Shown: positions 4,781-55,232, numbered from the stretch's first letter. The stretch: 64,000 nt of DNA from Epiperipatus broadwayi (GCA_028023455.1 JAQFVV010000003.1:14136001-14200000); one strand, 5' to 3'. Translations and numbers: made by a program. The notes: generated from the sequence alone by a model not told the origin.

Positions 4781-5372
4781 TTAAAACAGGCAAAACTCTT
4801 TATACATAAGCCAGAGTAATCAATGGATGCCAGAAGGCTTGTGCATAAAATCCCCATCTAATGCCTACTCATCCAATATTCCCAGACTAGTTTCTGGCTT
4901 GTGGCCTTTGTCAGTGAGGAGCTTTGGATCTGAGAGCACTGCATCTATATCTTAGGATCAGATTTAGGTGCAGTCCTCTCAGATCAAGGAGCCTTGGATC
5001 TGAGAGCACTGCATCTATATCTTAGGATCAGATTTAGGTGCAGTCCTCTCAGATCAAAGGCTCCTAACTAATGAAAGCCAGAAACTAGTCTGGGAATATG
5101 ATCTGAGAGGACTGCACATAAATCTGATCCTAAGATCTAGGTGCAGTGCTCTCAGATCCAAGGCTCATCACTGACAAAGGCCACAAGTTAGAAACTAGTC
5201 TGGGAATATTTGATAAGTAGGCACTAGATGAGGATTTTATGCACAAGCCTTCTGGCATCCATTGATTACTCTGGCTTGCATTGAGTGGAAATACATATAG
5301 AGAGTTTTGCCTGTTTTAATAAATTAAGAGCAAGCATAAAAAATGGTGATCATGTGATGTTTATTGGCTTAA
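4781..5372. mobile_element. Family A hammerhead-bearing fold-back element (Penelope pLTR/retrozyme-like) with several internal strand switches
   Basis: Left arm (antisense, starts ttaaaacaggcaaaactc) is the reverse complement of the right arm; decayed hammerhead cores at 4885-4914 (-), 5068-5090 (+, helix II deleted) and 5171-5200 (+); tail on right arm only; flanked by (TA)n on both sides. Confidence 0.85.
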
Positions 5373-6255
5373 TATATATATATATATGATTGTGATAATT
5401 TTAACCTGTGTCTCAAATTTAAGCTGTTTAAAAACTTGGATTTTTTTTTCCAAAATTTAATTTTAGGATATTAATTAGTAAATGGATATCTAGTTATCAT
5501 TAGCTAGGAAGCAAAATAAGAATTGAAAAATGCTAAAATCATCACCAGCTGCAGTTAATAGTAACTTACCCATTACAATTCTTCTAAATCTGTTGGTGAG
5601 ATTTTTACCTTGGGTTTTGTGCACAGAGTCTAGCATAATGCTTAAGCAATATAAGCTTGAATTATAGATACTATTTTAAATTGATAATTTTGTTTTTCAA
5701 ATAAATTATATATTGCATATCTCATAAAGTTCATTTTAGAAGTATGATATTTTTCTCATCAGTGACAATATGTTAATACTTACTCATCTGTTTAATTCAA
5801 ACTAATTTGCAATTTTTACTCTTCAGCTACAAATAGTTAGATACCCATTTACCAATTGGATGAGTACATGAGTTGTCCATGAACCAGCCATCTAACAAAA
5901 AACAGGATTGTTTGAAATTTTTCAAAGAACTGAAAAAGATTTGGAACCAGTTCAGGCAGGCAGCTCTAGGTTCAAATCTGACTGAAATGTAATGATTTTT
6001 TCAAATAGATCATATAGTCAACCAACATTAAATGGAAAATAGGAACCTTTTTTAGATGGAGAATAAAAAGATCTTCTGATAAACTAAACCATTTGGATGA
6101 GTGTTGACATAGTAAACATTTAGAAAAAAAAACCCATGTTCTATTATATTCAACTTCATTACTAGTGCAAAGAGAGTTTAAAATGTCTTTGGACAATGTA
6201 AGGAATTTAATATTACATGTAAAGTTTAAATTATTATGATTATTTCATTATATAT

Positions 6256-8857
6256 TGTAACCAGTTGGGTTACATAGCACACAATAATATAGTATGTGTG
6301 CATTTATATATATGTATAAAGTGAAGGAAAAGTAGAAATAAACACAGACAAAAATTGTAGTAAATATTTTTTATATTCACTGAAATAAAAATAATAAAGG
6401 GTTAAATAACTCTGGGTTTAAAATAAAATTTTATTATAAAATTAAATATTTAAAAAGGTCTGATAAATAAAAATTAATATTTTTATTCTGATTTTGAAAA
6501 TTTAAAAATAAGCATGTTTTCTGATAATTATAAAAATGTCTCTTTTTGAAATCTTTTAATTAATTGATATCAGAGTAAAAACATGTATGTAGATCACACC
6601 TTTGGTTAAATTCCAAAGGTTTAAAGTTAATTGAAATCAAATTTTTCCAAACACACTTTGATAAAAATTTCAAGCTTGTTTTCAAAATGATCAGAAAGAT
6701 TGAAAACAGACACTATGTTTTTATCATCTGAACCAACCAAGATTATAAAAAGACTGATAAAAAAATAGCAATTAGTTTTGACTTGTAGCTTTCCTAAGAG
6801 CTGACCTAATGTGTGGTTTTAATATTTTAAGCAGGTGGCCAAATTGACCAGCTGCAAAGTTTGTCATAATAAATTTTTTAAGACAGTTCTTGTCATAATT
6901 TTTTTTTGTGAAGCAATTAGTTAAGAGTTAGCTGCAAATTTTGATTTAAATTTTTGAAGAGCAGTTGGCTAGAAGTTTTGCTGTAGTTTGCAGTACTGCT
7001 GAAAGTGATTTTACAGAGTTAAAAGAATGAACATGAAATAATTGAAGGCAGGACAGTAGATCCAGGAGCTGCTATTTTCCTTCACAGGAGTTTTGATTTA
7101 CTTGAAGCTGGATCACTTCTGAATCAATAGCCTGAACAAATGAAGACAAAATAGCTTTCTGGCTTGCATTTTATCAAATCCTAGTTTAAGTGGAACCAAC
7201 TTCAGAAGGGAGAAAGCCAACAAACCCGATTCTTTGATTGATAATGGCAAACCAGTCTACCAGTTTGCCCAAGAGAACCCCAACAGTTGATGTAGTTATA
7301 CGAATGCTGCTGTGTCTATATCCAGAAACACAGATAAATGGATACACAACGAGTTGTATTTTTTTGTATATTCCTTTAAGAAGACATTTTAACTTAGTAA
7401 CTTAAAGTAAAAACAAACAAGCAACTTTTGCTTGAGTTGAAATCTAACAGCGTTATATATAATAATGAAATTTAAATGATTTCTTTGGTCTGAAATGATA
7501 GATATATAAAACAATTTTATTTTTCGTTTATTAAAGGGGGGAAAAAATGACATTTTATATTTAGAGACCTTGATAATTAATTAATCAGCAAGTACGTGTC
7601 AAAAAAAATTGACTTTATTTAGTTTGAACAGAAAAAAAAAAAAAAAAGAGAACTTATAAAGCGATAACTAATTTTAAATTATATCTATGTTTTGTTTATA
7701 TACAGGTATACACGTGAAATTTATATATGTTTTCCAAATGGAATTAATTAGGAAAATATAATATTATTATTATAATAAATTAAAATAAGACATTTATGTA
7801 AAATTTAATCATTTTTTGTCATTATTGAATATCAATAGAAATATATTAATTGTATATTGGAAATCGCGCATCTGTATGCACATGTATGTAAATCAATATA
7901 ACAATTTGAATTTTGAATAGTAATTATGTAAATCGCAATGTGATCATTTGAAATTTTGTATAGTAATCAAAATCAGAAAACTTATGATTTTATTTTTATA
8001 GACATTAATTTCAATTTTTTGTTATTGTTGTAAATAAACTTGTATTCAATTGTTAAAAATTGTATTAAATCATCACTTCTTGGTCACATACAGTAATAGA
8101 GCTTATAGCTAGATTCGAGCATGAGGTAAATATATAAATAGGGATGTGTATTAGTGCATTTGGGTATCTAGAGATGATCAATCATCATCCTGGTTGGCGC
8201 AAAAGAGAATACTTTTTAAAGCCCATGCACTACCTTTTATTTTAGTTTAGTCTTATTAGAAGTTAAGTTTATAGTTGGCCAGTACATCAATGGTACCAAG
8301 TGTCCAGAGCATTGATGATGATCATTATTTTAATATCCCAGCATTATTGTTTAGATTTTTCTGGTTATGTATTCTGATGGATTCACTCTTAGTTTGTGCC
8401 TTCAAATTAATGGTTAAACAATTGCCCCAAGCTGGCAAAGGCTCAATAGTTAGCCTGATCTACAGAAGACCCATTTCCGATCCAGTCACAAGGTTGACTG
8501 TTGATTTATATTTTTTATTGTTCAAATCCAGCCACAAGATGGACTGTTAATTTTTTTCTGATGTAGTTCGATTTTGATCATTCATGATGAGGACTGGTTT
8601 ATTTTGAGTATTACTCATAATTACTTCTACTTTGTTGGTTGATGGTTAAGTATGCTTTTAGTTGCTCTTCTGATCTCTCAGAGATTTTATTGATCTCATG
8701 CTCCCCTTAAATATATCTTACTTATATATATTTATGTAAATTATTGATATTTCATTTTAAATTGGCTGTGAGTGATGATGATTTTCCATCATCCCAGGTA
8801 TGACAATGATCAACTTTCTTTTTTTCCTTCTACTTCCCACTATCCCATCCCATTACA
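6256..8857 (+). mobile_element. 2.6-kb solo-LTR-like element, copy 1
   Basis: Begins TGTAAC and ends TTACA; colinear along its length with the reverse complement of 57562-60266, and homology stops at these termini; flanks ATAT / ATGT (near 4-bp TSD); AATAAA near 8034; no RT or gag ORF. Strand is assigned by convention. Confidence 0.7.
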
Positions 8858-9257
8858 ATGTATATATAATTTTGACAACTATACTTACCTGGAAAATCAA
8901 TTATAATATCTAAATTCATTTTAATTAAACAAACGTCATCAGTTGAGCACTTCAAATGTCACATTCTACTGTTTTAAATTTGTTGAGGTACTAAACCATT
9001 ATATTGTTATTTATATAGGAAATTTTACATAAGTTTATGTATAGTTTATAATATATGATACAGAAATATCTATATACATATTTTTTTTCCACCCTACAGC
9101 TTTTCTATAAATGAAACTTTTGTTCTGTCATGAGATGAAGGTATATATTAGAGACAAATGAGAAAAATAATGCAAATAAGTCAATATCTTTAAGATTTAC
9201 TATTGCAATTGTTAAATGTCATAGAACTGTATATCTTGGTAGAAATCTAAAATTATG

Positions 9258-9408
9258 GCACCATACAGTAGTGCCACCCCATGCAAGCTTTAGTAATGAA
9301 TGGATATAAGAAGTTTTGTACATAAAATCTCTGTCTAGTGCCTGCTCATTCAATATCCTCAGATGGCTTTTATCAGTGAAGAGCCTTAGATGTGAGAGGA
9401 TTGCATCT
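9258..9408 (-). mobile_element. Older, decayed family A fragment with the ribozyme core partly deleted
   Basis: catacagtagtgcc...aatggat...cataaaatc...ctagtgcc..ctca..caatatc...atcagtga.gagcctt.gat aligns to the family A antisense strand. Confidence 0.7.
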
Positions 9409-9556
9409 TTTTGCATTCATTGATTACTAAGACTGGTAAAACTTAGTTTGATATCAAATTTTTTATTTTTTCTTAAACAAAAAAATTGAAGCGATAACAC
9501 ATATTTATAAATTAACAGATGTGATTATAGGTCAATTCAACATGATCCATTTTTAA

Positions 9557-10766
9557 GCCACTAAACATCACATGACCACCACTTCTTATGCTTGTGTGTA
9601 ACTGTTTAAAAAAAGGCAAAACTCACTATATGTATTGCCACACACGGCAAGCTAGAGTAATCAATGGATGCCAGAAGGCTTGTGCATAAAATCCCCATCC
9701 AGTGCCTACTGATCCAATATTCCCATACTAGTTTCTGGCTTGTGGCATTCATCAGTGAGGAGCCTTAGATCTGAGAGCACTGCACCTAGATCTTAGGATC
9801 TAATGCAACCCTCCAGCAGCCACCTTTTATCTCTACTTAACTACAAAACTATGAGACAAACTAAATCACCTTAATGTCTTCAATCTAAGCCCATTAGCTT
9901 ATATAGTCATATATATATAATCCTGCCTAATAGAATAGTGGTGGCTATGGTTATTAAAAAAACCAAAGACACCAAAATGTATGGGTACTGAATTGAGTTC
10001 AGACCCATATGACTATATAAGCTAATGGGATTAGATTTAGGACAATAAGGTAATTTCAGTTTAAGTCTCATAGTTTTGTAGTTAAGTAGAGATAAAAGGT
10101 GGCTGCTGGAGGGTTGCACTAGATCTTAAGATCTAGGTGCAGTGCTCTCAGATCCAAGGCTTCTCACTGACAAAGGCAACAAGCCAGAAACTAGTCTGGG
10201 GATATTGGATGAGTAGGCAATAGATGGGGATTTTATGCGCAAGCCTTCTGGCATTTCATTGATTACTCTAGCTTGCTGCGTGTGGCAATACGTATAGTGA
10301 GTTTTCCTTGTTTTAAAACAGTTATACACAAGCATAAGAAGTGGTGGTAATGTGATGTTTGTTGGCTTAAAACCCTGCCTAATAGGATAGTGGTGGCTAT
10401 GGTTATTAAAGAACGAAAGACACCAAAATGTATGGGTACTGAACTGAGTTCAGACCCATATGACTATATAAGCTAATGGGCTTAGATTAAAGACATTAAG
10501 GTGTTTTCAGTTTAAGTCTTATAGTTTTGTAGTTAAGTAGAGATAAAAGGTGGCTGCTTGAGGGTTGCATTAGATTCTAAGATCTAGGTGCAGTGCTCTC
10601 AGATCCAAGGCTTCTCACTGACGAAGGCCACAAGCCAGAAATTAGTCTGGGGATATTGGATGAGTAGGCACTAGATGGGGATTATATGCACAAGTTTTCT
10701 GACATCTATTGATTACTCCAGCTTGCTGTGTGTGGCAATACGTATAGTAAGTTTTACCTGTTTTAA
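9557..10766. mobile_element. Family A element: inverted partial unit plus head-to-tail dimer of the ~452-bp unit
   Basis: Antisense arm 9557-9910 (with tail), (TA)n spacer, sense units starting cctgcctaatag at 9922 and 10374; hammerheads at 9726-9755 (-), 10167-10196 (+) and 10618-10647 (+). Confidence 0.9.
10612..10653 (+). ncRNA. Minimal type I hammerhead ribozyme motif (family A), near-intact
   Basis: TTCTCA CTGACGA AGGC-CACAA-GCCA GAAAT TA GTC TGGGGA: helix I TTCTCA/TGGGGA (with G.U pairs), core CUGANGA and GAAA, helix II GGC/GCC, GUC cleavage triplet. Confidence 0.75.
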
Positions 10767-11009
10767 AAAAAATATCCATTTTTCTTGGAAATTTTTTAAT
10801 TCTCCAAAAATATTAGATATACCTAGCCATAAACTGAAATTAAAAATTGCAATATAATTTCATTTAAAAATCTCAACCTTTCTCAATTATGTAAAAGAGT
10901 ATGTTTTCAGATTAATAGCTTACTAGATGAGCTACAGGAGAAAAATGTATTAATTTTTCAAATTCCCATTGTTATCTCATATCTATAATTGGTACAATTT
11001 TAAAAACTA

Positions 11010-12876
11010 TAACAAAGGTAGCTGGTAGAAAAAAGCAGCAATTCGCCAGTAAAATTTCTACTGAGACTAAAGAATTTATGAAGAAAATAAAGAGTATAAA
11101 GATATATAAAAATTATGCATTAAGAAGGATTGAATATCTCAAATTTTGTAAAATGATACCAAAAATAGTTGACAAGGATACAAAAAAGTATAATTGCAAA
11201 TAGCAAAGCCATAGAAGAGAATAAAAGTCTCAAGAGTGTAAAACAATATTTTAATATTGGTAGGAGACTCATTTCTGCAATAATACAAAAAGATGGAACT
11301 ATTACTAAAAAGAGAAATGACATCATGAAATGTATAGAGTTCTATCAAGAATTATATAGTAATAAAGAACAAGAAAAAGTACATCCTACAATATCTAAAT
11401 TGCCCAGGATTTTTAATGAAGTGAGACATGCAATTAAATTTATGAAGAAGGGAAAAGATCCAGGTAATGATGGAATTTATAATCGATATCTTAAAAGAAG
11501 CAGTTGAAGAAATAGAACTTTTTTTGGCAAAGTTATATACCAAATATTTAAATGATAAAGATGTACAAGATGATTGGAAGAATGTAGTATTAATAATAAT
11601 ATTTAAAAAAGATGATAAAAAAACATTAGAAATTACAGCCATATCAGTCTTTTATCAGTTTTATATACATTTTTTGCCAAGATAATTACAACTTGTCTGC
11701 AGCAAACTTTGAATTTTAATCAACCAAAAGAACAAACTGAATTTAAAAGTGGTTTTAGTACATTGGATCATATCCAAATATTAAGAGAATTTATAGAAAT
11801 AATCAATGAATATGAGTTGCCATTATGCTTTGGATTTCTAGATTATGAAAAGGCAGTTGATTCTATATGTATTTCTTCAGTGATTAAAGTATTGGATCAT
11901 CAAGATATAGACCCAGGATATTGGCATATTCTGAAGAATATTATAAAAATGCAACAGCAACAATTAGATTATATAATAACACTAGGAAGATGAACATTGA
12001 GAAGGGTGTATGAGAGGGTGACTCCATATCTCCAAAACATTTTGCAGCAGTGATGCAAAAAGTATTTTGTGGATTAAAATGAGAAGCTAAAGAAATAAAA
12101 GTAAATGGAGATTATCTAAAGTCATCTAGATTTTGTCAATGATGTAGTTGTTTTTGCAAATAACGATTTAGAGCTTCAGGAATCTTCAACAGATTTTCTT
12201 AAAAAAAAAAGATTGATAATGAGTTAAAAGAAATTAACTATAAATACTTTAGTCAAATTATTACTCCATATGGAAATATAATGGATAAAATTAATCATAG
12301 AATTAAATTTTGTTGGAGTTCTTTTGGTAGAAATAAGTTAATTTTTTAAAAAAAATGCCAATGTGTTTGAAAAGAAAGGTCTTTAAAAAATGTGTTTTAC
12401 TAATACTTACTTATGGATCTGAGACTTGGACACTTAATAAAATGATTTATATTAGGAATAACAAGAAAAGATCATAAATGAAATACATAGATGAGAAAAC
12501 AAAATGTGTTTTACTAATTCTTACTTATGGATCTGAGACTTGGACACTTAATAGAATGATGTATATTAGGAATAACAAGAAAAGATCATAAATGAAATAC
12601 ATAGATGAGAAAACAAAACTGATATCATTAAAAGAATTAAAAGACTGAAAAGAAGTTGGGCTGGATGCATTGTTAAAAAAAGATGATAATAGATGGACAG
12701 TTGAAATCTTAAACTGGATTCCAAGATTGTAAAAGACCTAGAAAAATATGATATGAGAGATAGATGAATGGCATAAAGAAGTTTTATGGAAATGTAGAGA
12801 AGAGAGGTTAGAGAGTAGAGAAAATGAATTTGGAGAGACCATCACCCTGTAGTGGATAGTGTTTGAAATGATGATT
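11010..12876 (+). mobile_element. RTE-clade non-LTR retrotransposon, 5'-truncated and degenerate (RT domain to 3' end)
   Basis: Frameshifted ORF pieces KGKDPGNDGI, QPKEQTEFKSGFSTLDHIQILREF and GFLDYEKAVDSI; downstream matches to the GV..GDSISPK, F.NDVVVFA and LTYGSETWTL motifs; ends in an (ATG)n tail typical of RTE. Confidence 0.9.
12387..12618 (+). repeat. 114-bp direct tandem duplication inside the RTE fossil
   Basis: tgtgttttactaat...gatgagaaaacaaaa repeated at 12391 and 12505 with few mismatches. Confidence 0.9.
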
Positions 12877-15800
12877 GTTTTGGGGAGATTAAGTAGCTCA
12901 TCCCCAAAACAGCAAAGATGTTTTTCTAAAAACTAATCATGCTGGAATTTAAACTCAAGCAATTCATTTATATATTTTATGGTAACATAAAATTGGTATA
13001 ATTTAGTAAAATTTTATCTCACTCTGATAGATCTCCATTATTAAATTTTAAAAAAGTATTCATAATTAAAGTTAAATTATTATTTTGGCATAATCACGCT
13101 TGAAAAATTTTTGAGAGGTATAGTTTCATAATATTCGGCCATATATAAGAACTTATATAATATTATACTTTGATAGTTATTTTAGAAATGATCAATAAAT
13201 GTTTGAAATCTGCTGTAATAAAAATGGTAATACAATTTACATTAACACAATATTATTTCTCAGATCTCTCAACACTTTCCTTTATTAAAAGCTTCTAGAG
13301 AGATTTTTAAATTGACTGTGATCTTAACTTACAGAAAAATCATACATTGTGATAGCATTTTTGATGGTGAATCCTGCTTAGAACAGTGATTTAATTATAA
13401 CAGATCTTTAAAAATAATTTGAATATAGTATATGATCTTTCAGATGCCTTCTAATAAAGTAGAATGTTATGTAGATATAATTTGACACTTTGGTTAAATT
13501 TTTTTAAAAAAAAAAAATCTCTTTTTTTTCCCCTTCATCTACTAAAAAAAAAATTCCCAACTAACCATCCCAACAATTCATAAAAAATTGATATTTTTAA
13601 AAAATAATTTGAATTTATTTTAAGTCTTGCTTCTGTTTGATGATTTTATTTGGGTTGATTTATCACATTATATATATCTCGAGCATTATTTATGAAATGT
13701 AGATCTGTCTGAATTATGTGGAAAGACCAAATCCTTTTGCATTGTGTTCCTGATATTGGCATAATAATTTGTTAAACTCCCACATTAAAAATTATGCTAT
13801 ACCCCCCTCCCCCACAGAATTATTCTTTTTAAAAGATATGTAAAAACATCTGACCTTGTTTATCTGTAAGAGATCTATAGGGAAAGAATATAAAACATGG
13901 CAAAATGACAATAAAATAGAAACAAATATCTTAAGAAAGAAGCAATGCTGTATGTACCACATGGCATTTGCTAACGTATCATTTTATTAATAATTTTAAG
14001 GTTTCATGCACCAACTGAAATGATTTGTATATTAATCAATCTATTGTATAAATTTTAAAAAATACTAATACTTCATCATAAAAAAATATTGATAATATTA
14101 AACACTATCTTAATGCATTTTTGATGCTAAGCATTCTTGTCAAAGGTAAGCTTTTTTTAAAAAAAATTAATGATTGCTTATGATAAAGATTCTCAACCAT
14201 GAAAAGGTGTTAAAGTTCTATTTAAGATTATCAATGCGATATTAGTTTTTAATTTATTATATTTCAGTGAGTTTTTCTAATCAGTCTATTGTATGTAAGT
14301 TTTCAAATGATGTTGGAACAAAATTTTATTACACGGAATAATATTTTAATGGAGCAATACTTCTCTTTATATTGGATGATATTCATTTCCCCAATTTTAA
14401 TTTGTAATTAAAATAATATAGAATAGAATGTTTAATACTGTCTCCATATGTTCAGTGGATTTTTATGCAAAAACACATACACATTATATATTATAACCTT
14501 TTAATTTAATAGCTATTTCAGAGAATAATTTAAATTTCACATAATAGTCAAAATTTTAAATTTATGAAATACATAGTCATATTAATATTAATTCGTATAG
14601 TTTATTAAAAGTCTAATTTATAAAATATAATCATAGGATTCTGTCAATATAACCAATACACCTTTTATAATAGTCACAAATACTTTCAATGTCAAATTTA
14701 TTTCATTTGTAATTTTATTTAATAATAATAAACATATTTATATTATATTATATTTATCAACATTTATAATATTCTTTAAATCTTATAATAGGAACATTTA
14801 TTTAATTTCATTTATAGCGACTCTTGAAAAATGTGTGTGTGGGAATGTGTTCAAAATCTTATTTAACAATTATAAATGAATTGCACATCCTTGTTTAAAT
14901 GATATTTTTATACCAACTAGAATATTGAATTATTTAATATTATGATTTTTAAATAGTAATAATTTTATTTTTTAATATAATTTTTAATTATATATTTAAA
15001 TTTAAAGTATTCTTTAAATGTTTAAATATTTTGTTAATTTAATATTTTGTCATTATTATTAAAAATTGTAGACAAAATTAATTTAAGCAAAAGCTTTTCA
15101 GTTGATTAAAATTAGATGACCAATGAAACTGATTTAATCAGTAGTCTGACATCATAGTGTCTACAAGATAAAAGATGATGAGCAGATGAAATTTGAGTGA
15201 TATTGGAAAATTGAATAAATAGTAGGAATTAATAAACCTATTTTTGTTAGTTCCATAAAATTTATATTTTATTTTAAAATAATTTAAAAGTTATCTTAAG
15301 TTGAATAATTATATTCAATATGTTTTAAAAGGATTACAAAGTGATTATGGAATAAGTAAATTATTATTATTAGCTGTGAAGCTAATCCTATCTTAATATT
15401 GAATTGTAGTCAAACCATTGTTATTACTTAAAGTACAAAGAAACAGTAGCATTATTATTCTCAAGAAAAAAATGAAAGTGATTATCAAATTCAAAGAGTT
15501 TACAAATTTGTTTGCATAAGAATGTATTTTATCTCTGTATTTTTAATGATTATAAAAATTAGTTTACTCAGGAATCTTTATTTATTTAAAAGGAACAGTT
15601 ATTATAGACTTATTAAAATACTTCATAGAATTTTAAGTTAGATATCTAATAGTAATTATGAACTTGTTTTTTTTTTAAAAAAAAAATAATTATATTAGAT
15701 ATAATGACTAGCATGCTGAAAGGAAATTAAAACTAAATAGTTGAATAAATAATATGTACTTTTAACAGTTATTACTAAATTTACCAGAGTAATTGATATT

Positions 15801-16020
15801 TTTCTATAATGTTAAAATGGAAAATGAATAACTCTTGCTTATATTTAAGAATATGTATATTTTAAGATGAAATGAAATATTATGATAATTTAAAAGGAAT
15901 TATTTATTTCAATAAATAATATCAAAGAAGAATATAAATTATATTTTTAATAAACAAGAACTTGATATTGTACTGAAACGTCAGCTTTTAGCTTTTTCAC
16001 TACACGGAATATCCCGCAAA

Positions 16021-16101
16021 TAGTAGTAGTAGTAGCAGGAGTAGGAGAAGGAGTAGTAGTAGTAGTAGTAGTAGCAGTAGCAGTAGTAGTAGTTGTAGTA
16101 G
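16021..16101. repeat. Imperfect (TAG)n/(GTA)n microsatellite
   Basis: Directly visible tagtagtagtagtagcagg...agtagtag. Confidence 0.95.
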
Positions 16102-30037: not shown

Positions 30038-30048
30038 TTGGCGGGAAA
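30038..30048 (+). promoter_or_regulatory. Consensus E2F site in a CpG-retaining intronic patch
   Basis: TTGGCGGGAAA (reverse complement TTTCCCGCCAA); surrounding 29.9-30.4 kb keeps CpGs. Confidence 0.45.
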
Positions 30049-38889: not shown

Positions 38890-39200
38890 AAGTCCATTGA
38901 CAAATTAAAAAAAGTTATAAAATGTTGGGTACAAGTATTGACAAAGTGATTAAGTTGGAAACAGATTAAGAAAGGAAAAGTTGATTGAAAAGCAGTGTAG
39001 ATATCTAGGAAATATTGCATAGATATAATGTTCTAATAACTGAATTATATAGTTTGAGAAAAATACATCTACATCTACTAGATGTTGTTGAAAGCAAAGA
39101 ATGAAAAAGTTATTAGTTAGGAAGATGAATCCATTAAAATAATAAGAAAAACAAATATCAATAATAACTGAAGGAATCATTAGTGGGTAAGAAAATATGA
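38890..39200 (+). mobile_element. Highly decayed RTE-like LINE fragment
   Basis: LIEKQCRYLGNI resembles the xEQVxxFKYLGSxI motif, and RMKKLLVRKMNPLK resembles the following RTE segment. Confidence 0.4.
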
Positions 39201-40870: not shown

Positions 40871-43810
40871 TTCCATTTTTGCAATAAGGCTGTTATTCTT
40901 CCCAATTGTTTTAATATTCACAACTTTAATTTATTTTTAGAAATATCTCTATAGTATTTACTATCTTAACAATTTGTTGATCCCAATGGAGCCTATATCA
41001 GTAATAGATTTTATAACTCAATTTAATCATTTCCAATTTATTTTTTAAAATGTGTTTACACCATCAAGGGAAATATTGCTTCCAAGATGACCAAAGATAA
41101 AAAGTACTGGTTGTATCAATTATTTTTCTTATGTGCATTTAGAAATAACTGCTCCAGTAATAATTTAAATTTAATAAGATGTGTTTATAATGAATAGTTC
41201 TTAAAATTGCTTGTAAACATTGCATCGATAGCAATTGAAAATGATATATGTAATTATTTCTAATTTTATAAAAATGAAATTAAGAAAAATGAATATTTTT
41301 TAAATCAACTTTTATCAAATGATATTTTATGCTTATTTTATACTAAGGCTGTATTCATGTTAATGAACTTTATATATTTTTCTTTTGTAAATCAGTGTTC
41401 ATACCATTTTTACAATACTGTTGAATAGTCTGATATTGTGTCTGCTTATTTATGATTGTTCTTTGTATTATAACTGTCATATTTAGATGTCATTTAGTTA
41501 ACAAAAATATTAAAAAATATTAAGCATGATATTTAATAATTTTATAGTTTGGAAAATTGCCAAAGATATATATGAATGCTATAAGCAGATTGATAGTATA
41601 TCTTGCTGAAAAGTGCTTGTGTGCATGAACTAAAAATAATTATAGTGAAAAGCTATTAGTGTGAGGTATTACTATGCTGAATCCCCAAATTTATGACTAC
41701 TGTGATCAAAAGTTACAAGTTTGCATGTATTAGTAAACAAAATTGTTTCAAGTAGATAGAGGATTTTGGATATATTTCATGCAACTGTCTTTTAGAACCT
41801 CTTATCAGCTGGATGAGAATTTCAGAAGAATCTTCAGTAGTTTATTAAAGAAATAAGAATCAGAAATTATACATAGTATCGAAAAAAGCATCAAGTCTAA
41901 AAAGATAGAAGAAAATTGAAATATGTGTATATATGTACAAGATCCTTGTCAATTTTTTTTTTTATAAATGTCACCAATAGATTGACTGTTGTATATTTTG
42001 TAAGTTTCAAAATTTTTGTATAAAAGTTGATCAGGCATCAGAATAAATAAATATGCCTCAATAGTATGTATACTCTGCTTTAAGCAGGATATTAGTTCAT
42101 TCCTGAAGCAGGAAGAAATTATATTTAGATTGAAGATTTTTTTATCACTTTAGTCAATGCTTATCTTTTAAGATGCTATTTTATTTTTTATTATGAAAAG
42201 TTATTGAGTTGTAAAGTTGGTAAAGGTTGCAACTGTTTTTTTAAAAAAAGGGCTGGGAAATTTATTAATAGAATAATTGTATTTGGTTTCTTGAGAGATT
42301 TTGTGATATTAAACAGCACTCCAATAGGTTGAACACAATTGCATCATTTAAATAATTGACTGGACATTTTTCTCTTTAATTCAAGACAATTGATCTTTAG
42401 CTCTTCTACTATTTTAGAAAATAGCACAGGGCATTAAATAATTTAATATAATATATCATCACTTGGAAAATGCAACAGTTTGCCAGACTACTATATCTTT
42501 TGGAAAAGAGAACAAGAAACAAGTGCTATAGTTTTCCATATTGGTGCACGAACATCATTTGATCTTGCAAATAATTGAAATAATCATCAGCTTTCTTTTC
42601 ATGATGAACAAAAAATTAATAACCTATAATAAAGACAGCTCTTCAAAAATCAAAGTGCACTCTATAATCTGTGTCAGTTAATTAGTCAAGATTACAGCAT
42701 ATTAGAGTGAAGAAAACTACTTTTGGAAACATAAGAAGGTCATGATATTATTGTTGGTATTAACCCTTTCTAGCCAAAGGATAGAAGAACCTGTAATTGG
42801 TACAAAACAACTGGCATAACCAGATTTATATAACTATGCTAGTTGAATTGTGTTCAAACCTTTGCTTTTTTAAAAAAAATTTCAAACTATTTACTTGAAT
42901 AGTATAACAGAATAAAAGGTGATTGCTTGTTGTAATCCTTAGTTCCACCTTTGAATTCTAGTTCTCATTAAAAAAGACAAAAGTGAGAAATCAGTCTGGG
43001 GATCGGGACATTATAACATTATACTGTTTGGTATCCATTGATTACTCATTTATAGCAGATAGCTATAGAATAGCATGATGATAATTGTTCTTGGAAGCAT
43101 GAGAAATGATATTGTTATTTGTATTAACTTTTCTAGTCAAAGAGTAGACTGGGTCTAAAGTTGGTATAAAACAGGTTTTTTTTTAAAAATAGAAATTGAT
43201 TTGATTTCATGTTTGTATAATTATGCAAATGAGTTTGCTTGGGTTCAAGATCTTAGTTTTTTTTTTTTTCATTTCAAGGATAGCTCTTTGATGCATAAGT
43301 GCATTTGTTCCAGTTTTGGATTGTAATTTTCACTGAATAAGGCAAAATTTAGAAACAAGTTTGAGAATGGGAATATTATAACCCTTTGCTATTTGTTATC
43401 CATTAATTCCTTAAAATACAGTAGATATCTGTAGACTACAGTGAAAATATAGTAGATAACTGTAGATTACGGTGAAAATATTTGCTTTTGGAAACTTCAA
43501 CCATAGTGGACAAAAAATGAACACATATTCAGAAATGATTATCTTTTGGTGAATAAAAAAAAAATACAAATTTTAATCAGGATACCGTAAATGAATTTGA
43601 ATAATGCTGAAGTAGTCTATTTTTCATATTCATGACCTTTCAGTGATCAAATTCCATGGTCTACATGCATAGTTATTTTTAACCCATTTTTTGTCATATG
43701 AAAGGATTTGAATTACCTGATATTTCATTCTCAGAAATTTATGAAACATTTTCAATTGTGAGTACTAATTAAAATAAAAAATCTAATAAAATAAATCAAT
43801 AAATATCACA

Positions 43811-43984
43811 GTTAATGTTTGGTGGTGTCTTGATTGGCTAATAATAAATTATTTGTTTCTATAATTATTTTTGACCAAGCACATTAAATTTTATTAGGTT
43901 AATGTTTGGTGGTGTCTTGATTGGCTAATAATAAATTATTTGTTTCTAGAATTATTTTTGACCAAGCACATTAAATTTTATTAG
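43811..43984 (+). repeat. 2 x 87-bp direct tandem duplication
   Basis: gttaatgtttggtggtgtcttgattggc...ttttattag repeated at 43811 and 43898, nearly identical. Confidence 0.95.
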
Positions 43985-46386: not shown

Positions 46387-46716
46387 AATTTTCACAGAGG
46401 CAAAACTCTCCATATAGTAGCACCATTCAGTGTAAGCCAGAGTAATCAATGGATGCAGAAAGGTTGCATTAGATCCTAAGAATTAGATGCAGTGCTCTCA
46501 GATCCAATGTTACTCATTGATGACAGTCACAAGCTAGAAACTAGTCTAGTGGTATTGGATGAATAGGCACTAGGTAGGGATTTTATCCACAAACCTTCCT
46601 GCATTCATTGATTACTCTGGCTTGCACTGAGTGGCGCTACTGTATTGAGAATTTCGCTTCTGTGAAAAATGGCTTGTGTAAGCATAAAGAATGGTGATCA
46701 TGTGATGTTTGATTGT
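46387..46716. mobile_element. Family A fold-back (diverged subfamily)
   Basis: Short antisense arm 46387-46462; sense arm to the tail aatggtgatcatgtgatgttt; decayed core TTGATGA..GAAACTAGTC at 46517-46546. Confidence 0.85.
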
Positions 46717-49334
46717 TTATTATCATAATTGGTGCAGAAATATCTTAGTGGCATGAGAGACAACTAACTTAAATAACTGAAAGTAATATAAAATGCATTA
46801 ATAATCAGGAAATAATTTATGTAACTTGAATTTCCAAATTATTAATGTTTATTGTAAATATTCAGTAATAAACATTAAAATATATAGAAATTGATGTGAA
46901 ATTTCTAACAAAAAAATAAACTCTTAGATAAACAACAAAAATAATTTTGCAATTGCTTATAATCTCCAATATTGGATATATTAATTTGTTACAGTATGAG
47001 ATGTATTTGTATTTTCTAATGTTATTGTAGTAGTAACGTTAATGTAAAAAAGTTTGAGTTGCTGGATGAGGGTAAATATTTAAAAAGAAAACCAATTGTG
47101 TATTAAATCACTGGATGATAGAGCAATAATTCTAGGAATTGTTACATTGTATTTTTTTGATATGAAAATTAAGTAGATTACATTCATTATTTTTAATAAT
47201 TGCAAATACTGCTAACATTTATTATTATATAGCTAAATATTGGATGATTACATTGTGATTTAACTTCTTTTTTTTTTACAGCATTCATTGATCATATTTC
47301 CTCAATTTTTTTGCAATAATTAAAAATATCCCTGGAGGACTTATACTGTTTTAGATATGGCAAGTTTTACTACTGCTTCTCTTATGGAACTTCTGCATGG
47401 TTTAATGCAGTGATAAGAGAAACAAACTATAAAGCTAAAGGTTGACATTTGCCGCTCAAGCTGTCAGTTCTGATGCTTGCACATGACCCTCTAAGCAACA
47501 AATCATTATTATTATTTTTTATTGAAAATGACACAGAACATGTATAATTAATTTTGTTCAAATAAGACCAATGTAATACATGAGTGTAAATGTTTGCCTG
47601 ACAATAATATTTTAAAGAAAAAAATACCGTTGTATGAAAAGTTAGATAATAAAGTAAATTATGTGTCTGTACACTTTGGACAGTTTACTATTCTTAAAAG
47701 GATATTTCTCCTGTTATGATAGAAAGTTTAATTATTATTATTTTTTTTTTACAAATAATAGTGTTTCATTTATATTAGGATATATTTATAAAAGATCTCC
47801 ACAAATTACTTTTTTGTTTAAAACTTTATGTAGTTAATATTATTTGACCCTAAAGAATTGGCTAAGAAAACAGTCAATTTGCTCCATAAGTCATATCCAA
47901 TTGAAACATTTATTTAAACAATGTGGAAATTCAGAGCACTAACGAATAATATTCTTTTTTTTTCATTAATCAAGCTGATTTTTTGATTACTCTGATTTTT
48001 TCTAGAACAATCAAACAAACTAAAGTGAATTTGTGAGCTTTATTAGAGCTAATGTAAGAAGTCAGTTTAGAATGTTATCTCAATGTTTGTAAGTATTGAA
48101 GTGAATAATTCATCAAAGTTCATTGTGCAAATATGCTGATATCCTCTTTGAGTGCCATATTTTCTTTTATTGTCGCTTCCATTTACTTACATAAAAACCC
48201 TCTTAAACCCAAAATTTGAAAAACAGAATTTACTGAATTAGAATTTTTTTTTCTTGGACATTATCAGTCTGTATATCAATAAATGTAATCCTAGCTTCAA
48301 TTCCATCATTTTGATCATTTGTTCATCATTACATTTGAAGAAATTTAGTATTTTTGTTATTTTACATAGACTTTTAAATAGAATTCTATCAAATTTTTAA
48401 TAGCATTTTTTTTCTTAATTTATTTCTCAAACCTTCACTTATTTTTTTTCTCATGATACCATGTATATTCTGATATTCTATATTTTCTATTTTACTTACA
48501 TTGCATAAGAATCTAAATTTTCTTCACAATATAAGGTTTAATTTTTTCATTTGTTTTTATTTGATGTACATAACTTCTAATTGACATAATAGCTTTATTT
48601 TTGACTTCTAAAAATTGCTGACTGATGAGGATTCTTGAAAAATGAATGATCTTAACCTTAATTATCTAAAGTTTTTTCTCCTTGATAAATCATTTTTTCT
48701 GAGCGCAAATCGAATCTTACAAATCCAATAAATGCATTGCTAGGTTATAAGGGACTTATAGATATATTTTAATATTTTTTTTGATACCATATTAATGTAT
48801 TACATCAGTGGCTCATCATTTCTTTTTGTACACCCTCTTTCTCTGTTCATAAATTTATCTTGTTTTTTTTTTTTTAAATTTTGTCCAGCACTGTTGATGA
48901 TTCTGTCTTATGTATCTTTTAAACATTGGACTATGCTGTTCTTGCTCTCTCTTATTTTTCATCTCCCAACCTTTATATATATATTACTTTGCTTTTGTTA
49001 ACTTTATCCTTGGTTGCTAATTTTAGTTTCTATGTAAGTTTTTTTTTCTTTTTTGTTACTATACTTATTTTCTTTTCTGCATATATTTACAGTAAGATTC
49101 ATATCTACATTTTATTTATTAAAACAAAAAAAACAACAACAACACACTCTGCAAATATAATGCTGATAATCTACACTCACTTTTATTTTTAGATCCAAGT
49201 ATTGCATATTATAGCTTTAATTCATAAACTAGTATTAAAAAAGTTTTGTCTTATTCATTTCTCATTGTGTAGAAGTTTTCTAATATAGAGCATTATTATT
49301 ATCTTTATTATTTTATTTATGATTGCTAAAGGGA

Positions 49335-49602
49335 TTTTAAAACAGGCAAAACTCTCCATACAGTAGTGCCACTCAGTGTAAACCAGAGTAATCAATGTAT
49401 GCCAGAAGGCTTCTGCATAAAATCCCTATCTAGTGCCTACTCATCCAATATCCCCAGACTAGTTTCTAGCTTGTAGCCTTCATCAGTGAGGAGTCATCCA
49501 TTGATTATTCTGGCTTGCGCTGAGTGTCTCTACTGTATGGAGAGTTTTTCCTGTTTTAATAACAGTTATGAGCAAGCATAAGAAATGGTGATCATGTGAT
49601 GA
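49335..49602. mobile_element. Family A fold-back
   Basis: Antisense arm 49335-49493 without tail; sense arm 49494-49602 with tail. Confidence 0.9.
49451..49492 (-). ncRNA. Best-preserved family A minimal type I hammerhead ribozyme
   Basis: Minus strand reads TCCTCA CTGATGA AGGC-TACAA-GCTA GAAAC TA GTC TGGGGA: 6-bp helix I, intact core, 3-bp helix II, palindromic ACTAGT helix III, GUC triplet; predicted cut between 49457 and 49456. Confidence 0.8.
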
Positions 49603-49662
49603 TAAATGGATTTTAAATAAATTTTAAATCAGTTAAAATCTGTTATAGGAAAGATTATAAGC

Positions 49663-52492
49663 CAGGAGTGGGCATGCACAAGGCCAATGGGAGCCACATG
49701 CCTGTTTTCATATATTGTATAGAGCCACACCATATTATTTAAGTACATAAAGAGAAATACATATAGCCAAATTTTATTTAACTTAATTAACACGATGACA
49801 TATTCTACACAAGTTTTAAGTGCAATCAAGAGAAATAAATAAAATACAAAATAATTATTTCGAAATTTTAATAATAAAAATAAAATATAGTAATAAAAAT
49901 TCATAAATAAAAAGTACAACATTTAATGAATGTCTTTGGTCAAATATTTGTAATTTGGTGTATAATTTGTTAAAGCCATTTGCAGCAATTCTTTGAGATG
50001 CCAATTGGTCAACTGTGAACGATATTTTGACTTTATGAATTTCATTGTGGAATACAACAATTCACAGCAATATACTGTACCAAAAATTGAAATTAGATAG
50101 CAAGCAGCTTTTTTTAAGTGTGGACATTTTGATTCTAGCATGAGTTTCCAACATTCAGTTAGAGAACAAAATTTGTGATGCATTTGCATTTCCTGATCCT
50201 CTTTTATCCTTAATAACTCCAATTGTCCCACTGTTTTGGAAATCCATCTTCAATAATATCACAAATAAATGGGTTTACAAAATATGCAAATGCAGATTTA
50301 AAACTTTTCAAATCTTCAAACCTACATTAAGAAATTCACTTGCAATTTTTCCAATTTTATTTTATATTTGTCTAATTTCTCTTCTTTGATATATATTTTT
50401 TTTTACTCATGGAAAATGATTAAATATTCTGCACTTAAGATTGTGCATGAAAAGCCAAAGTTTAGTTTCAGAACTAAATACACTTTGTGATTTTTTTTTG
50501 TGACAAATCACTAATCATTTATTCCTTATGTTCCATAATGTCTTTAAGGAACATTAAATCAGAAAGCCAAGTTTCATTTTCTAATTCTGGGAATTTTTTT
50601 TCATTTTTTTTTAATGTTATGATAAGATTTAGGAGCTGCACAAAATGGCTCAAAACATTGCAAGTTGAAAGCAATCTTATAACTGATCATAATGAGAGAT
50701 CACTGGGCAATTAATCTGTTTTTTCATTTTTACTTCTCTAAAAAGTTATTAAATTGATGGTGTGTTTTGGCATTTGTTCTAATTAAATTTACAATCTGCA
50801 AAATAATCTTCCACACATTTTTGTATTTCACATGATATTGCGAATTATGCAATGAAGAGGTACAAAACATGGATTTTTAAGATTGTTGTTTAAAAGACCA
50901 ATAAGACCTAGGTTTTGCCCTATCATTGCAGGGACTGCTGTAGTCATAACACTTACAAGCTTATCATTAGGCAATTTGAACCTGTTCATTACTTCATCAA
51001 GTGCATTTTTGATATCATCGATACTGCGAGTTGAGTTGTTTCAGTAAGAGCTAGTAGATCTAACATAACATTTGCAGATACATAGCAGATAAAAACAGCC
51101 AATTGTAGAACACCATGAATGTCTAGAGACTTATCTTTAAGAGTGAAACTGAATGCTGTACATTTTTTTAAATCACACATCAAACTACTTTCAAATTTTT
51201 ATTAATTTTACTAAGACAGTAGTAAGGCATAAAATAAGAACTTGTGCAATCAGTTTATGCGGTTTTGTATTATCTGGATCCAAAAATTGAACCACTTCTT
51301 ACAAATTTTTTTTAATAAATTTTCCTTCTTCATATGGATGTTTGGCATAAGCAACATTTTAAGCTATCAAAAAACTAGCTTTGTTGGCTCTGGCATCTTC
51401 ATGACTAAAAGAAGACAATAGTCTGTTATAAACAATGATAGGGTCATGTGATATATGACTCTTATTTTGACTATTAATAGTCTTTGTTACTTATGAAAAC
51501 CTGATTGTAATGACTTAAGTTTCTCTGTTTGCAATTTTGAATTGTGTGGATATTGAATTGAAAAATGGGGTTGACTTATTATGTAATGTGGCAAAAATTA
51601 TTTACTTTGTAGTTTGCAAGTGTAACTTTGCAAATAAGACACAATGACATTTCATTATTGTCAATAAAAGAAAATTTGTCTACCCATTCTTGCTGAAAGC
51701 TTCTATTTTTTCATTTTTTTATATTTTCTGAGATCATGTTAATAAAAAATATAAGTAAATTTATTTTTAAAGTCTGAAATTCAAACAAAATAATTTTTGT
51801 TTAAAAAGATTCGTAAGTGATGCAACAAATTGTTGAAGAAACAGAGCTTCTTAAAATAAAATAGGAATAAAAACAATTTTTGATTGATATTTTTTCCTGC
51901 TAATTCTTAAATGTCTGTTTTATTATTTACCACCAAAATATTATTTACCACCAAAAATAGAAATAATATAACCAAAGTCAAGAAAATGCTTTCCAGTTTT
52001 AGTTTCAAGAGTTTTTCATATAATTGTTTTAAAAAAACAGGAAACTATAAATCCACTAATTATAAACAACTAAAACAAATTTTTTAACTTGTACACATGT
52101 CCTTTGAAAGCCTGTGCAGACGCCTATGAAAAATTACACATCATAAACAAGTTTAAATTGCCTAATAAAACAGTCTGTTTACCATATTTTTTGAAGAAAT
52201 ATGAAATAGGACATTTAACTAACTAATAGGAAAAACACTATAAAAGCAGGTAGCAATTTTTATAAAATTCAGTAGGTGTCATTAATTTATAGTTTGTCAA
52301 TATATTTGAAAATAATATTTACATGCTAACATAAATTTTTAATAAAATAAGTAATACAAATAAATGTTTGATAAAAATTTCATATTACAAATTTTTGTGC
52401 AATTAAATAAAAAATCTGAAATAATAAAAATAAATTTGGATTTCAATGGGAGCCACACTTAGCTCGATTAAGAGCCCATTTGTCCACCATTG
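49663..52492 (-). mobile_element. Full-length but dead hAT (Charlie/SPIN/Buster-like) DNA transposon, ~2.83 kb
   Basis: Degenerate TIRs CAGGAGTGGGCA / TGTCCACCATTG; TSD ttataagc / tcataagc; GGGAGCCACA near both ends; minus-strand transposase remnants KASFLIA..KHPY..GKFIK, KSLDIHGVLQLAVF, AVPAMIG and HCII, and the C-terminal dimerisation domain FGTVYCCELLYSTMKFIKSKYRSQLT. Confidence 0.9.
51439..51476 (+). mobile_element. Tail-only family B fragment nested in the hAT transposase
   Basis: gggtcatgtgatatatgactcttattttgactatt is nearly identical to the 3' tail of the 27.2-27.6 kb copy (gggtcatgtgatctatgactcttattttgaccatt). Confidence 0.6.
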
Positions 52493-52509
52493 TCATAAGC
52501 TATTAGTAT

Positions 52510-53224
52510 TATATATAGAGCTGCAAATAAGCTATGAACAAGCTTTGCAGAATATCCCCAACCCCAGACTGGTTTCTGCTGCTGGCTTCCTCAGTGAGGT
52601 GCTAGGATATTCAAGCATTAGATTAAAAATACTAGGACAGGCCCAACACTTTATTTAATGGATAACTATTAAGTAGAAAATCTGAAATTTTCAGACATTC
52701 ATATGTTTTCCAGTCCAGCTATCTAATTTAAATAGGCATATGGGACTGAACTAAGTTCAGATACACCATATGTTAATAACTTTAGCAATATAAAATCGCT
52801 AAAGTCTTAATAGCAAACAATAAAATTACAAAGAAATCAAGTCATAGTTCAAATGACCTAATTTAACAAGCTTGCATTACAAATGTTATATATAGAGCTT
52901 GCAAATAAGCTCTTAACAAGCTTTGCAGAATATCCCCAATCCCAGACCGGTTTCTGTTACTGCTGGTCATGTGATATATGACTTGATTTCTTTGTAATTT
53001 TATTTTTTTATATTAAGGCCTTGGTGATTTTGTATTGCTAAAGTTATTAATATATGATGTATCTGAACTTGTTTCAATTCTATATGGCTATTTAAGTTAG
53101 ATAGCTGGATTGGAAGACATATGAATGTTTGAAAATTTCAGATTTTCTACTTAATAGTTATCCATTAGATAAAATGTTGGGCTTGTCCTGGTATTTTTAA
53201 TCTAATGCTTGAATATCCTAGCAT
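52510..53224. mobile_element. Family B element: ~1.2 tandem antisense units (period 377 bp) plus an inverted sense arm
   Basis: atatatagagc recurs at 52511 and 52888; 52965-53224 is the reverse complement of ~52600-52860. Confidence 0.9.
52562..52599 (-). ncRNA. Family B minimal type I hammerhead ribozyme motif
   Basis: Minus strand reads CCTCA CTGAGGA AGC-CAGCA-GCA GAAAC CA GTC TGGGG: helix I CCUCA/UGGGG, intact core, GUC triplet; helix III is a decayed ACCGGT. Confidence 0.7.
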
Positions 53225-53459
53225 TTGGTGTGTTGAAATATGTTATTTTTCTTCAGACTTGAATAAAAAGAAAAGAACTCAAAGGTAGAATTCTTTCTGA
53301 TGAACAAAAATATTATGCTAATAATAATCCCGGTTTGTTTTCCTGCTCAATTTGGTATAGGTGTATAGTGGGAAGACTGGAGCTCAAGATCCCTGCCCAG
53401 TCAGCCATTTCCAGTGCTTAAATTTTTTATGAATTCCTGAACAATAAATCATTGATTTA

Positions 53460-54110
53460 ATTTTATTGATTCAGATATTAAATTAACTTGGAATATCTAG
53501 TAATTATTAATACCCTACGCTAATTAGATTCTCAGTTATTAACAATATTGGAATGGATTGGCAATCAGCCTATCAAGAATTGCTTAAAAAATTTTATCTG
53601 AAATTTAATTTCATGGGTACAGGTGGTAAGCATAATTAGATGGATGCTATATTCACTAAATTGTTCAAAAGTAGAATGACTAGACAATAGAATACCATAA
53701 TCTAGTGAAAATATTTTAAATTCATTGGTGATAAACAAAATTTTTATTTTGGCATCTCAATATTAAAGCCATGTTATAAGTGTTAATGAGTTTTTACATC
53801 ATGTTTAGAACTTGCTATTTCTGACAATACCTTATGGTTAACATTTATGAATAAGCACCTTCCATTATTGTCTCTTGATAGTTTAGTTTCTGATTCAGCT
53901 AAACTTTTTTCTGATAGACATAAACAAAAAAAAAAATTATGCCAGAAATACCTACCCCACATACATTGAGCATTTCTGTGTTAAAGAATTTTGACCGAGT
54001 TTTCTAATTTCTTTTTAAATTTTTTTTTTTAAAACATTTTGGTTAATAGTGCTTTTCTCAGCTGAACTCTACCACATTGCAACTATTTTAGACCAGTATC
54101 TCTTTAATGT
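53460..54110 (-). mobile_element. Very decayed CR1/L2-like RT C-terminal fragment
   Basis: Weak minus-strand matches to the W...FNAEK, YLGVxI and LEYASxxW motifs, in the expected order. Confidence 0.35.
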
Positions 54111-54301
54111 ACATACACTACACTTTAACATTTATTTTTCTAGTGAAGTAGAGATATTAACTGCCTGAATTTTTAATTACACTACTTTTTCCCAAGCTAG
54201 GGACTGATTCCTTGTGGAAGGATGAACAAAGTGAACAAACATTGTACTATAAATATATATTATTCATGAAATGCATATTTGGTGAGAAAGAGGAATCTGT
54301 T

Positions 54302-55232
54302 ATTAAAACAGGCAAAACTCTCTATACATATTACCACTCAGTGCAAGCCAGAGTAATCAATGGATGCCAGAAGGCTTGTGCATAAAATCCCCATCTAGTG
54401 CCTACTCATCCAATATTCCCAAACTAGTTTCTGGCTTATGGTCTTCATCAGTGAGAAACGTTGGATCTGTGAGCATTGCACCTGGATCTTAGAATCTAAT
54501 GCAATCCTCCAGCAGCCATCTTTGATCCATACTTAACTACAAAACTATGAGTCTTAAATTGAAAAACCATAATATTTTCAATCCAAGCTCATTAGCTTAT
54601 ATTGTCATATATGTCTGAACTCAGTTCAGTACCTATACATTTTGGTATTTTCAATTCTTTAATAACCATAGCCACCACTATCCTATTAGGCAGGATTGGT
54701 TTTCAGCCAATAAACATCACGTGATCCCCATTTTTTATGTTTGCTCATAACTGTTATTAAAACAGACCACTCAGTGCAAGCCAGAGTAATCAATCCTGCC
54801 TAATAGGATAGTGGTGGATATGGTTATTAAAGAACCAAAGACACCAAAATGTATAGGTACTGAACTGAGTTCAGATCTATATGATTATATAAGCTAACGA
54901 GCTTGGATTGAAAATATGTTGTTTTCAATTTAAAACTCGTAATTTTGGAGTCAAATAGAGATAAAAGGTGGCTGCTGGAGGGTTGCATTAGATCCTAAGA
55001 TCTAGGTGCAGTGCTCTCAGATCCAAGGCTTCTCATTGATAAAAGCCACAAGCCAGAAACTAGTCTAGGGATATTGGATGAGTAGGCATTAGATGGGGAT
55101 TTTATGCACAAGCCTTCTAGCATCCATTGATTACTCTGGCTTGCATTGAGTGGTAATATGTATAGAGAGTTTTGCCTGTTTTAATAACAGTTATGAGCAA
55201 GTGTAAGACATGGTGATCATGTGATGGTTATT
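54302..55232. mobile_element. Family A element: full antisense unit, start of the next tandem antisense unit, and a full sense unit
   Basis: Antisense 54302-54693, junction attggttttcagccaataaacatc, sense unit from cctgcctaatagg (54795) to the tail; hammerheads at 54422-54451 (-) and 55036-55065 (+). Confidence 0.9.

Follow-up and report, generated by a model that had tools for sequence, protein, structure and literature searches.

Family A, a very abundant hammerhead-bearing repeat of Epiperipatus broadwayi, and its probable mobilisation by Penelope-like elements

The window analysed here is a 64-kb stretch of the genome of Epiperipatus broadwayi (GCA_028023455.1, JAQFVV010000003.1:14136001-14200000), within an assembly of 5.6 Gb and 18,588 contigs. 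It is AT-rich, with 20-33% GC per 2-kb bin, and it carries several insertions of a repeat that we call Family A, the unit of which has a GC content of 40%. An initial annotation of this DNA described five composite insertions and one decayed fragment as copies of a single non-coding element of about 452 bp with a hammerhead ribozyme. When the window was compared with itself by BLAST, these six stretches (Table 1) proved to be interlinked at 77-93% identity, so that the single repeat family is borne out. With the 452 bp at window positions 9916-10367 as the reference for all unit positions given below, Family A covers 3,315 bp, or 5.2%, of the window. The unit length of 452 bp holds for the tandem period in the window; in a tandem array elsewhere in the genome, successive cleavage sites are about 455 bp apart. 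The non-coding character of the element also stands, in that no open reading frame (ORF) longer than 70 aa overlaps composite B.

The ten hammerhead-homologous motifs that had been annotated in the window are all present, in very different states of preservation. Only two of the ten, 10612-10653(+) and 49451-49492(-), satisfy a strict descriptor that demands an intact core, a helix I of at least 4 bp, and a helix II of at least 3 bp. Two others (9719-9762 and 54415-54455) have kept the core with weakened helices, and in the remaining six the core is mutated, mostly by CpG decay (N7 = C followed by G8), giving CTGACAA or CTGATGA. Even so, the motifs did not arise by chance: the 25-nt core with up to three mismatches is matched seven times in the window and never in shuffled sequences, and the looser pattern CTGATGA-N8-30-GAAAC is matched three times where 0.19 matches are expected.

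Table 1. Family A insertions and hammerhead motifs in the window (unit positions refer to window 9916-10367).
Feature	Position	Strand	Description
Composite A	4781-5372		Inverted arm to unit ~401, then several short inversions, then direct arm of unit 207-452
Decayed fragment	9258-9408	-	Unit ~280-384; 77% identity; old, without ribozyme core
Composite B	9553-10772		Inverted copy 9556-9912 (unit 452 to 92), full unit 9916-10367, and 10368-10768 (ends at unit ~403); bounded by the direct duplication ATCCATTTTT
Composite C	46387-46719		Short inverted arm and direct arm of unit 185-449; 77% identity; flanks TATCATAATT
Composite D	49335-49602		Inverted pair, unit 403 to 248 (-), then unit 342-442 (+); flanks GGATTTTAAA
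Composite E	54297-55240		Head-to-head, near full-length copies, 54297-54764 (-) and 54792-55226 (+); flanks GAGGAATCTG
Hammerhead motif	4878-4921	-	Dead core CTGACAA, G8 to A
Hammerhead remnant	5061-5097	+	Helix II deletion; core CTAATGA
Hammerhead motif	5164-5207	+	Dead core CTGACAA
Hammerhead motif	9719-9762	-	Intact core CTGATGA...GAAAC; cleavage triplet GTA; helices I and II weakened
Hammerhead motif	10160-10203	+	Dead core CTGACAA
Hammerhead motif	10611-10654	+	Passes the strict descriptor; CTGACGA core; 6 bp in helix I and 3 bp in helix II; G.U pair in helix III through C15.2 to T
Hammerhead remnant	46513-46547	+	C3 to T, TTGATGA
Hammerhead motif	49450-49493	-	Best preserved; core CTGATGA, with GAAAC TAGTC; 6-bp helix I; G.U pair in helix II
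Hammerhead motif	54415-54455	-	Intact core; A.C mismatch in helix II; cleavage triplet GTT
Hammerhead motif	55029-55072	+	Dead core TTGATAA

The majority sequence of 56 copies, CTCCTCA CTGAYGA AGGCCACAAGCCA GAAAC TAGTC TGGGGA, agrees with the consensus first proposed and contains all of the invariant core (C3, U4, G5, A6, N7, G8, A9, G12, A13, A14, the pair A15.1-U16.1, and H17). That the motif is of the minimal type I and has a palindromic helix III is likewise supported. Helix I is open, as in type I, and is 6 bp long without a loop 1; helix II consists of 3 bp above an A.A apposition. Only two nucleotides close the 2 bp of helix III, whose palindrome, ACUAGU, could form 6 bp between two motifs. 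The hammerhead lies about 110 nt before the 3' end of the element.

The very high copy number that had been proposed is also a property of the whole genome. The core pattern CTGANGA-N8-20-GAAACTAGTC has 101,068 exact matches in the 5.6 Gb, as against 13 for a reversed control, and a search with the unit gave 6,266 first-look candidates. The scored copies are about 90% identical to the unit of the window and on average about 95% identical to the family majority, and they are dispersed over thousands of contigs. When the first 30 core-motif matches on one contig were examined, all 30 lay inside elements 78-92% identical to the Family A unit, and hence the great majority of the motifs belong to Family A and its subfamilies. 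The density of intact cores is about 18 per Mb, compared with about 4 per Mb for the type I motifs of axolotl in a genome of about 32 Gb. The axolotl motifs number 126,247, and there are more than 6,000 in a coral and about 5,000 in a mussel (PMC7229834). Outside this assembly, 10-40% of the 31-mers that make up a near-majority dimer recur in 14 public runs, drawn from eight organisms and five studies, which indicates that close relatives of Family A exist under several related species labels.

How the copies are inserted was examined by mapping the unit on 59 loci, of which 29 were picked by similarity and 30 by the core motif alone; the anatomy is the same in both sets, and the five composites of the window conform to it. 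The insertions are bounded by direct target duplications of 9-13 bp (for example, ATCTTTTGTT, TCTTACTAATTAT, ATAGTGCATCA, GATTTGAATATT, and TAGAGGATGGTT), and in the window such duplications flank four of the five composites (B, C, D, and E). At one outer edge lies unit position ~401 (...CCTGTTTTAA) of an inverted copy that is truncated at a variable inner point. On the opposite side, a 5'-truncated copy passes position 452 into a further unit, which ends at ~442-452 (...GATGTTTATTGGCT). In other words, both outer edges are 3' ends of the element, 45-50 bp apart in unit position. Some insertions contain two or three full tandem units, as in the array at locus L010, and a few are solo; most fall short of two full units. 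Within one insertion, the arms diverge from each other by 8-15%, and the unit of the window differs from the family majority by 6.8%. The arm divergence is thus about twice the divergence from the majority, as expected if the arms were identical at the time of insertion. Each insertion is one event, inside which an inverted 5'-truncated copy accompanies a partial tandem that forms a pseudo-long terminal repeat (pseudo-LTR, pLTR).

These features are hallmarks of Penelope-like elements (PLEs). As described by Craig et al., PLEs show strong 5' truncation, partial tandems that form pseudo-LTRs, an inverted 5'-truncated copy beside the 5' end, and a tail of 30-40 bp at one end only, and their hammerhead sits in the pLTR, near the 3' end (PMC8557442). 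Family A resembles them in its partial tandems, its inverted 5'-truncated copy, its one-sided tail, and the position of its minimal hammerhead. Unit stretch 402-~450 behaves as the one-sided tail of a PLE, at a length of about 45-50 bp compared with the published 30-40 bp. The kinship that this suggests is one of insertion anatomy, not of sequence similarity. Non-autonomous derivatives that form pLTRs are already known, namely MRC1 of Chlamydomonas, and Xenopus has retrozyme families that are sister to PLE pLTRs (PMC8557442; bioRxiv 10.64898/2026.07.22.740005).

Two observations on the insertions themselves should be mentioned here. The host site of composite A is a (TA)n microsatellite (window 4760-4781 and 5373-5390), and the target duplication of this composite is ambiguous because the insertion sits in the (TA)n tract. 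An insertion bias toward (TA)n has been reported for some PLE clades (PMC8557442). In addition, a near-perfect internal palindrome, TAGATCTTAAGATCTA, is found at window 10115-10141 (unit ~200-226), just upstream of the ribozyme. The short inversions of composite A (4960-5099) cluster around it and break there, and the palindrome may be a hot spot for template switching.

Enzymes that might copy such an element are encoded in abundance in the same genome. A search with the Pfam model of GIY-YIG gave 10,241 first-look candidates, and all 150 of those that were scored exceed the curated cut-off. Many of the matches lie inside open frames of 800-901 aa. The PLE ORFs carry a YVDD motif and occur in tandem and inverted arrays; at one locus (L073, G000:C12394:20940001-20950000), frames of 901 and 855 aa follow one another at a period of about 3.1 kb, with a third, inverted copy alongside. 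The ORFs at this locus and at five others (L074-L078) appear to be intact, with 749-901 aa, and are extremely rich in K, N, and I. Identity among the sampled ORFs is only 44-47%, which means that several PLE families are present. In the protein Atlas, the neighbours of a PLE ORF are clusters with RVT_1, HTH_animal, DUF8422, and GIY-YIG at a score of 0.97; they are all eukaryotic, and Arthropoda and Chordata are the commonest phyla. A Pfam hmmscan of the PLE ORFs returned no family, even at E up to 1. This silence is probably due to compositional filtering, as the HMMER search of the genome gives the GIY-YIG stretch 39 bits.

The explanation that we regard as the best, and as likely, is that PLEs supply the reverse transcriptase and GIY-YIG endonuclease that copy Family A, a non-coding, non-autonomous element of about 450 bp. 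That it is a non-autonomous retroelement, as the initial annotation had inferred, is supported by the non-coding unit, the copy number, and the PLE-type anatomy of the insertions. The following course of events can be proposed: (i) because helix III cannot close within one motif, two motifs, in neighbouring tandem units or in two RNAs, would pair through ACUAGU to form a double hammerhead that cuts after GUC; (ii) transcripts with at least two sense motifs would thereby release a unit of about 455 nt with 5'-OH and 2',3'-cyclic phosphate ends; (iii) the released unit would fold into a highly paired, branched rod; (iv) a tRNA ligase could circularise it, as in other animal retrozymes; and (v) the linear or circular unit RNA might serve a PLE enzyme as the template for target-primed reverse transcription. 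The predicted folds are consistent with the third step. A natural monomer from cleavage site to cleavage site (L010:1323-1777, 455 nt) is predicted to fold at -159 kcal/mol; its z-score against dinucleotide shuffles is -7.74, with no shuffle out of 100 equally stable. Three monomers folded as circles are predicted to be 69-74% paired, with z values of -6 to -7.4 against simpler shuffles.

Evidence that the ribozyme structure itself matters comes from helix II. Genome-wide, pair 10.2/11.2 is G-C in 38,024 motifs and A-U in 6,550, compared with 1,330 for A.C and 950 for G.U. The double change is thus 5.2 times as frequent as expected under independence and 5-7 times as frequent as either single intermediate. 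The majorities of the G-C subfamily (69 copies) and the A-U subfamily (nine copies) differ at 18 of 293 compared positions, and within the 45-nt ribozyme they differ at exactly two, which are the partners of this pair. In a third variant, which makes up about a tenth of the first hundred matches, A at 10.1 is changed to U and can pair with A11.1. The comparison between subfamilies is the informative one, because subfamilies reflect the sequence of the active source copies. The compensatory change is moderate evidence that the structure has been under selection in these source copies; it is not strong evidence, because it represents essentially one or two evolutionary events.

Several observations weigh against the proposed course of events, and they fall on different steps of it. 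The first concerns the ribozyme: the A.A apposition at the base of helix II and the length of only 3 bp are weak features, and the double-hammerhead pairing is predicted at -23.8 kcal/mol as against a cofold minimum of -29 kcal/mol, in nearest-neighbour energies that ignore the tertiary core. The Rfam hammerhead models gave no match to the window at the gathering score, nor, at E up to 10, to 10 kb or to 101 nt surrounding the best motif, in searches that were run without a comparable short-helix-III hammerhead as a control, so that the reach of the models for such motifs was not gauged. The excess conservation of the core that had been anticipated across genomic copies is also absent: per 15 nt, conservation is 0.90-0.96 across the motif and 0.94-0.98 elsewhere, so that the core is no better kept than its flanks. 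We do not hold this last result to speak against function, because the decay of inserted copies is neutral and a CpG lies in the core. Second, at many of the mapped loci the insertion has at most one motif in sense orientation, and such insertions could not release unit RNA alone. Third, none of 18 sampled PLE loci, a tiny fraction of the more than 10,000 candidates, shares Family A sequence or a canonical hammerhead according to BLAST, a loose motif expression, and a general descriptor that allowed an A3-U8 core. Matches in these loci were limited to a single unrelated Family A insertion and a sequence within the ORF of L067 that is probably fortuitous. No PLE remnant was found within the window either. 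Finally, the run data are Logan contigs of a type guessed as 'RNA?'; four of the 14 gave no pile-up of molecule ends and only scattered joints in single contigs, and contigs cannot show ends or circles. In all four organisms, the summed contig depth over the part of the unit that bears the ribozyme (~190-375) exceeds that over the remaining unit by a factor of 10-1000, and this suggests that the ribozyme module is common to more subfamilies, like the variant in composite D, which has a different segment 3' of the ribozyme, rather than that it is expressed.

Some of these points would also be explained if Family A were mobilised by PLEs with the hammerhead as a mere passenger or recognition feature, derived from a PLE pseudo-LTR and retained because the stem-loop region is required by the enzyme or the transcript, in which case there would be no cleavage and no unit-length or circular RNA. 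A minimal motif without loop-loop contacts, with a helix III that cannot close, with no response from the Rfam models, and often with a single sense copy per insertion is what this explanation would lead one to expect, and the function of the hammerhead in PLEs has itself been called unclear, given that clades without it proliferate well (PMC8557442). Against it, the majority sequence and more than 100,000 copies retain every invariant catalytic nucleotide; a plain stem-loop signal would not need CUGANGA and GAAA. Helix II also shows the compensatory change, and amphibian motifs with a comparably weak helix III do cleave as dimers (PMC7229834). We consider a passenger role improbable.

A quite different origin would be a short interspersed nuclear element (SINE) that depends on RNA polymerase III for its transcription and on a long interspersed nuclear element (LINE) for its copying, with a hammerhead-like motif that is incidental. 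By eye, the unit does contain an A-box-like TAGGATAGTGG (window 9935-9946, unit ~20-31) and, some 60 nt away, a B-box-like GAGTTCAGACC (~9998-10010, unit ~83-93), and a run of four Ts (unit ~394-397) directly precedes the 3' end at ~401; several such runs, however, also lie inside the unit, and neither ARAGORN nor Rfam finds a tRNA-like structure. LINE reverse transcriptases are at hand in the genome. Their products would be expected to look otherwise: the ends of Family A have no poly(A), A-rich, or microsatellite tail, and LINE-mediated insertion does not produce inverted and tandem copies that share one target duplication and have a tail on one side only. The SINE origin is thus very unlikely. 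The LINE sequence in question, at L007:2702-3448, is a fragment of a LINE-type reverse transcriptase (a 249-aa open frame, ...YEKAFDSI...) that adjoins a Family A insertion, and it shows that LINEs also populate this genome.

Least credible of all is a repeat that spreads at the DNA level, either as a foldback or miniature inverted-repeat transposable element (MITE) or as a satellite expanding through unequal crossing-over: many copies are indeed large inverted repeats (those at 9551-10372 and 54297-55190 are self-complementary at 85-87%) and tandem arrays such as L010 exist, but a MITE or foldback element is ruled out by arms that are truncated at variable inner points while their outer ends are fixed, by outer ends that are two same-sense positions (401 and ~450) and hence not terminal inverted repeats, and by target duplications that vary from 9 to 13 bp, and the copies are scattered across thousands of contigs.

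With copying by PLE enzymes as the preferred explanation, the question is where Family A stands among known elements. The initial annotation had considered it probably uncatalogued, and this novelty was overstated: the very abundant family is real, but its kind has already been described (PMC7229834; bioRxiv 10.64898/2026.07.22.740005). By every testable criterion, Family A belongs with the animal non-LTR retrozymes, or non-autonomous PLE derivatives. It has their type I hammerhead, head-to-tail dimers and trimers, low GC content, and target duplications of more than 4 bp, and its unit is at the upper limit of their size range (150-450 bp). A literature search with words from the helix II sequence found no matching paper.

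The resemblance to metazoan non-LTR retrozymes extends further, to a non-coding unit of a few hundred bp with less than 50% GC, the co-residence of PLEs, the possibility of some 10^5 motifs per genome, and a unit RNA that is predicted to be highly self-paired (PMC7229834). Animal retrozymes yield circular RNAs, and hammerheads with a weak helix III cleave as dimers (Cervera & de la Pena 2020, PMC7229834). In the axolotl motif HHR_Amex2, for example, a U.U apposition stands at the base of helix II, and the motif cleaves poorly alone and well as a dimer (PMC7229834). There are also differences. The hammerheads of the described metazoan retrozymes are mostly canonical, with contacts between loops 1 and 2, and the units, of 170-400 nt, are strung into long arrays, whereas Family A has a minimal PLE-type motif, a slightly longer unit of about 455 nt, mostly dispersed inverted-plus-partial-tandem composites, and a high motif density. 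Type I hammerheads also occur in amphibian satellite 2 and schistosome Sm-alpha, which are likewise short, non-coding repeats of high copy number; their motifs have loop-loop tertiary contacts and an unrelated sequence, in contrast to the open helix I of Family A, which lacks loop 1. In newt and axolotl, helix III of the motif is very weak and its loop palindromic, and the motif cleaves as a dimer (PMC7229834).

Apart from the ten motifs in Table 1, the window contains two further hammerhead-like sequences. One is a second form at 52562-52599(-), CCTCA CTGAGGA AGCCAGCAGCA GAAAC CAGTC TGGGG, with a shorter helix II, of 2 bp on A.A, and a helix III, ACCAGU, that is not palindromic. A weak match to the unit lies beside it at 52728-52770, and this form probably represents an older or sister family. 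The other is a strongly decayed remnant at 42964-43003(+), ...GAGAAATCAGTCTGGGGAT, outside the listed insertions.

A different kind of signal arises at the centre of composite E, where Rfam gives sub-threshold matches to the microRNA family MIR5512 on both strands (54653-54836; 51 and 50 bits, gathering score 139). We reject a microRNA here, as the signal is the long hairpin of the head-to-head junction. Junctions of this type could be mis-annotated as microRNA genes, or could give hairpin RNA if they are transcribed. Since they can be mistaken for microRNA precursors, Family A needs to be masked in annotation.

It has recently been proposed that animal retrozymes are non-autonomous PLEs; this was argued for vertebrates, and the authors did not examine other organisms (bioRxiv 10.64898/2026.07.22.740005). 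Family A extends this proposal beyond the vertebrates for which it was argued. For the debated role of the hammerhead in PLEs and their non-autonomous derivatives, it also offers a very large natural sample: intact cores number more than 100,000, the target duplications are clean, and the subfamilies are clear and show a compensatory helix change. A stronger claim is that Family A is the first well-defined example of unit-length circular RNA whose formation is driven by a minimal PLE-type hammerhead instead of the canonical loop-loop type, at one of the highest densities recorded; this is improbable. If it were true, the predominant insertions with inverted pairs might also yield long hairpin RNAs that feed small-RNA pathways, and Family A would link PLE mobilisation, ribozyme processing, and the production of double-stranded RNA in one element.

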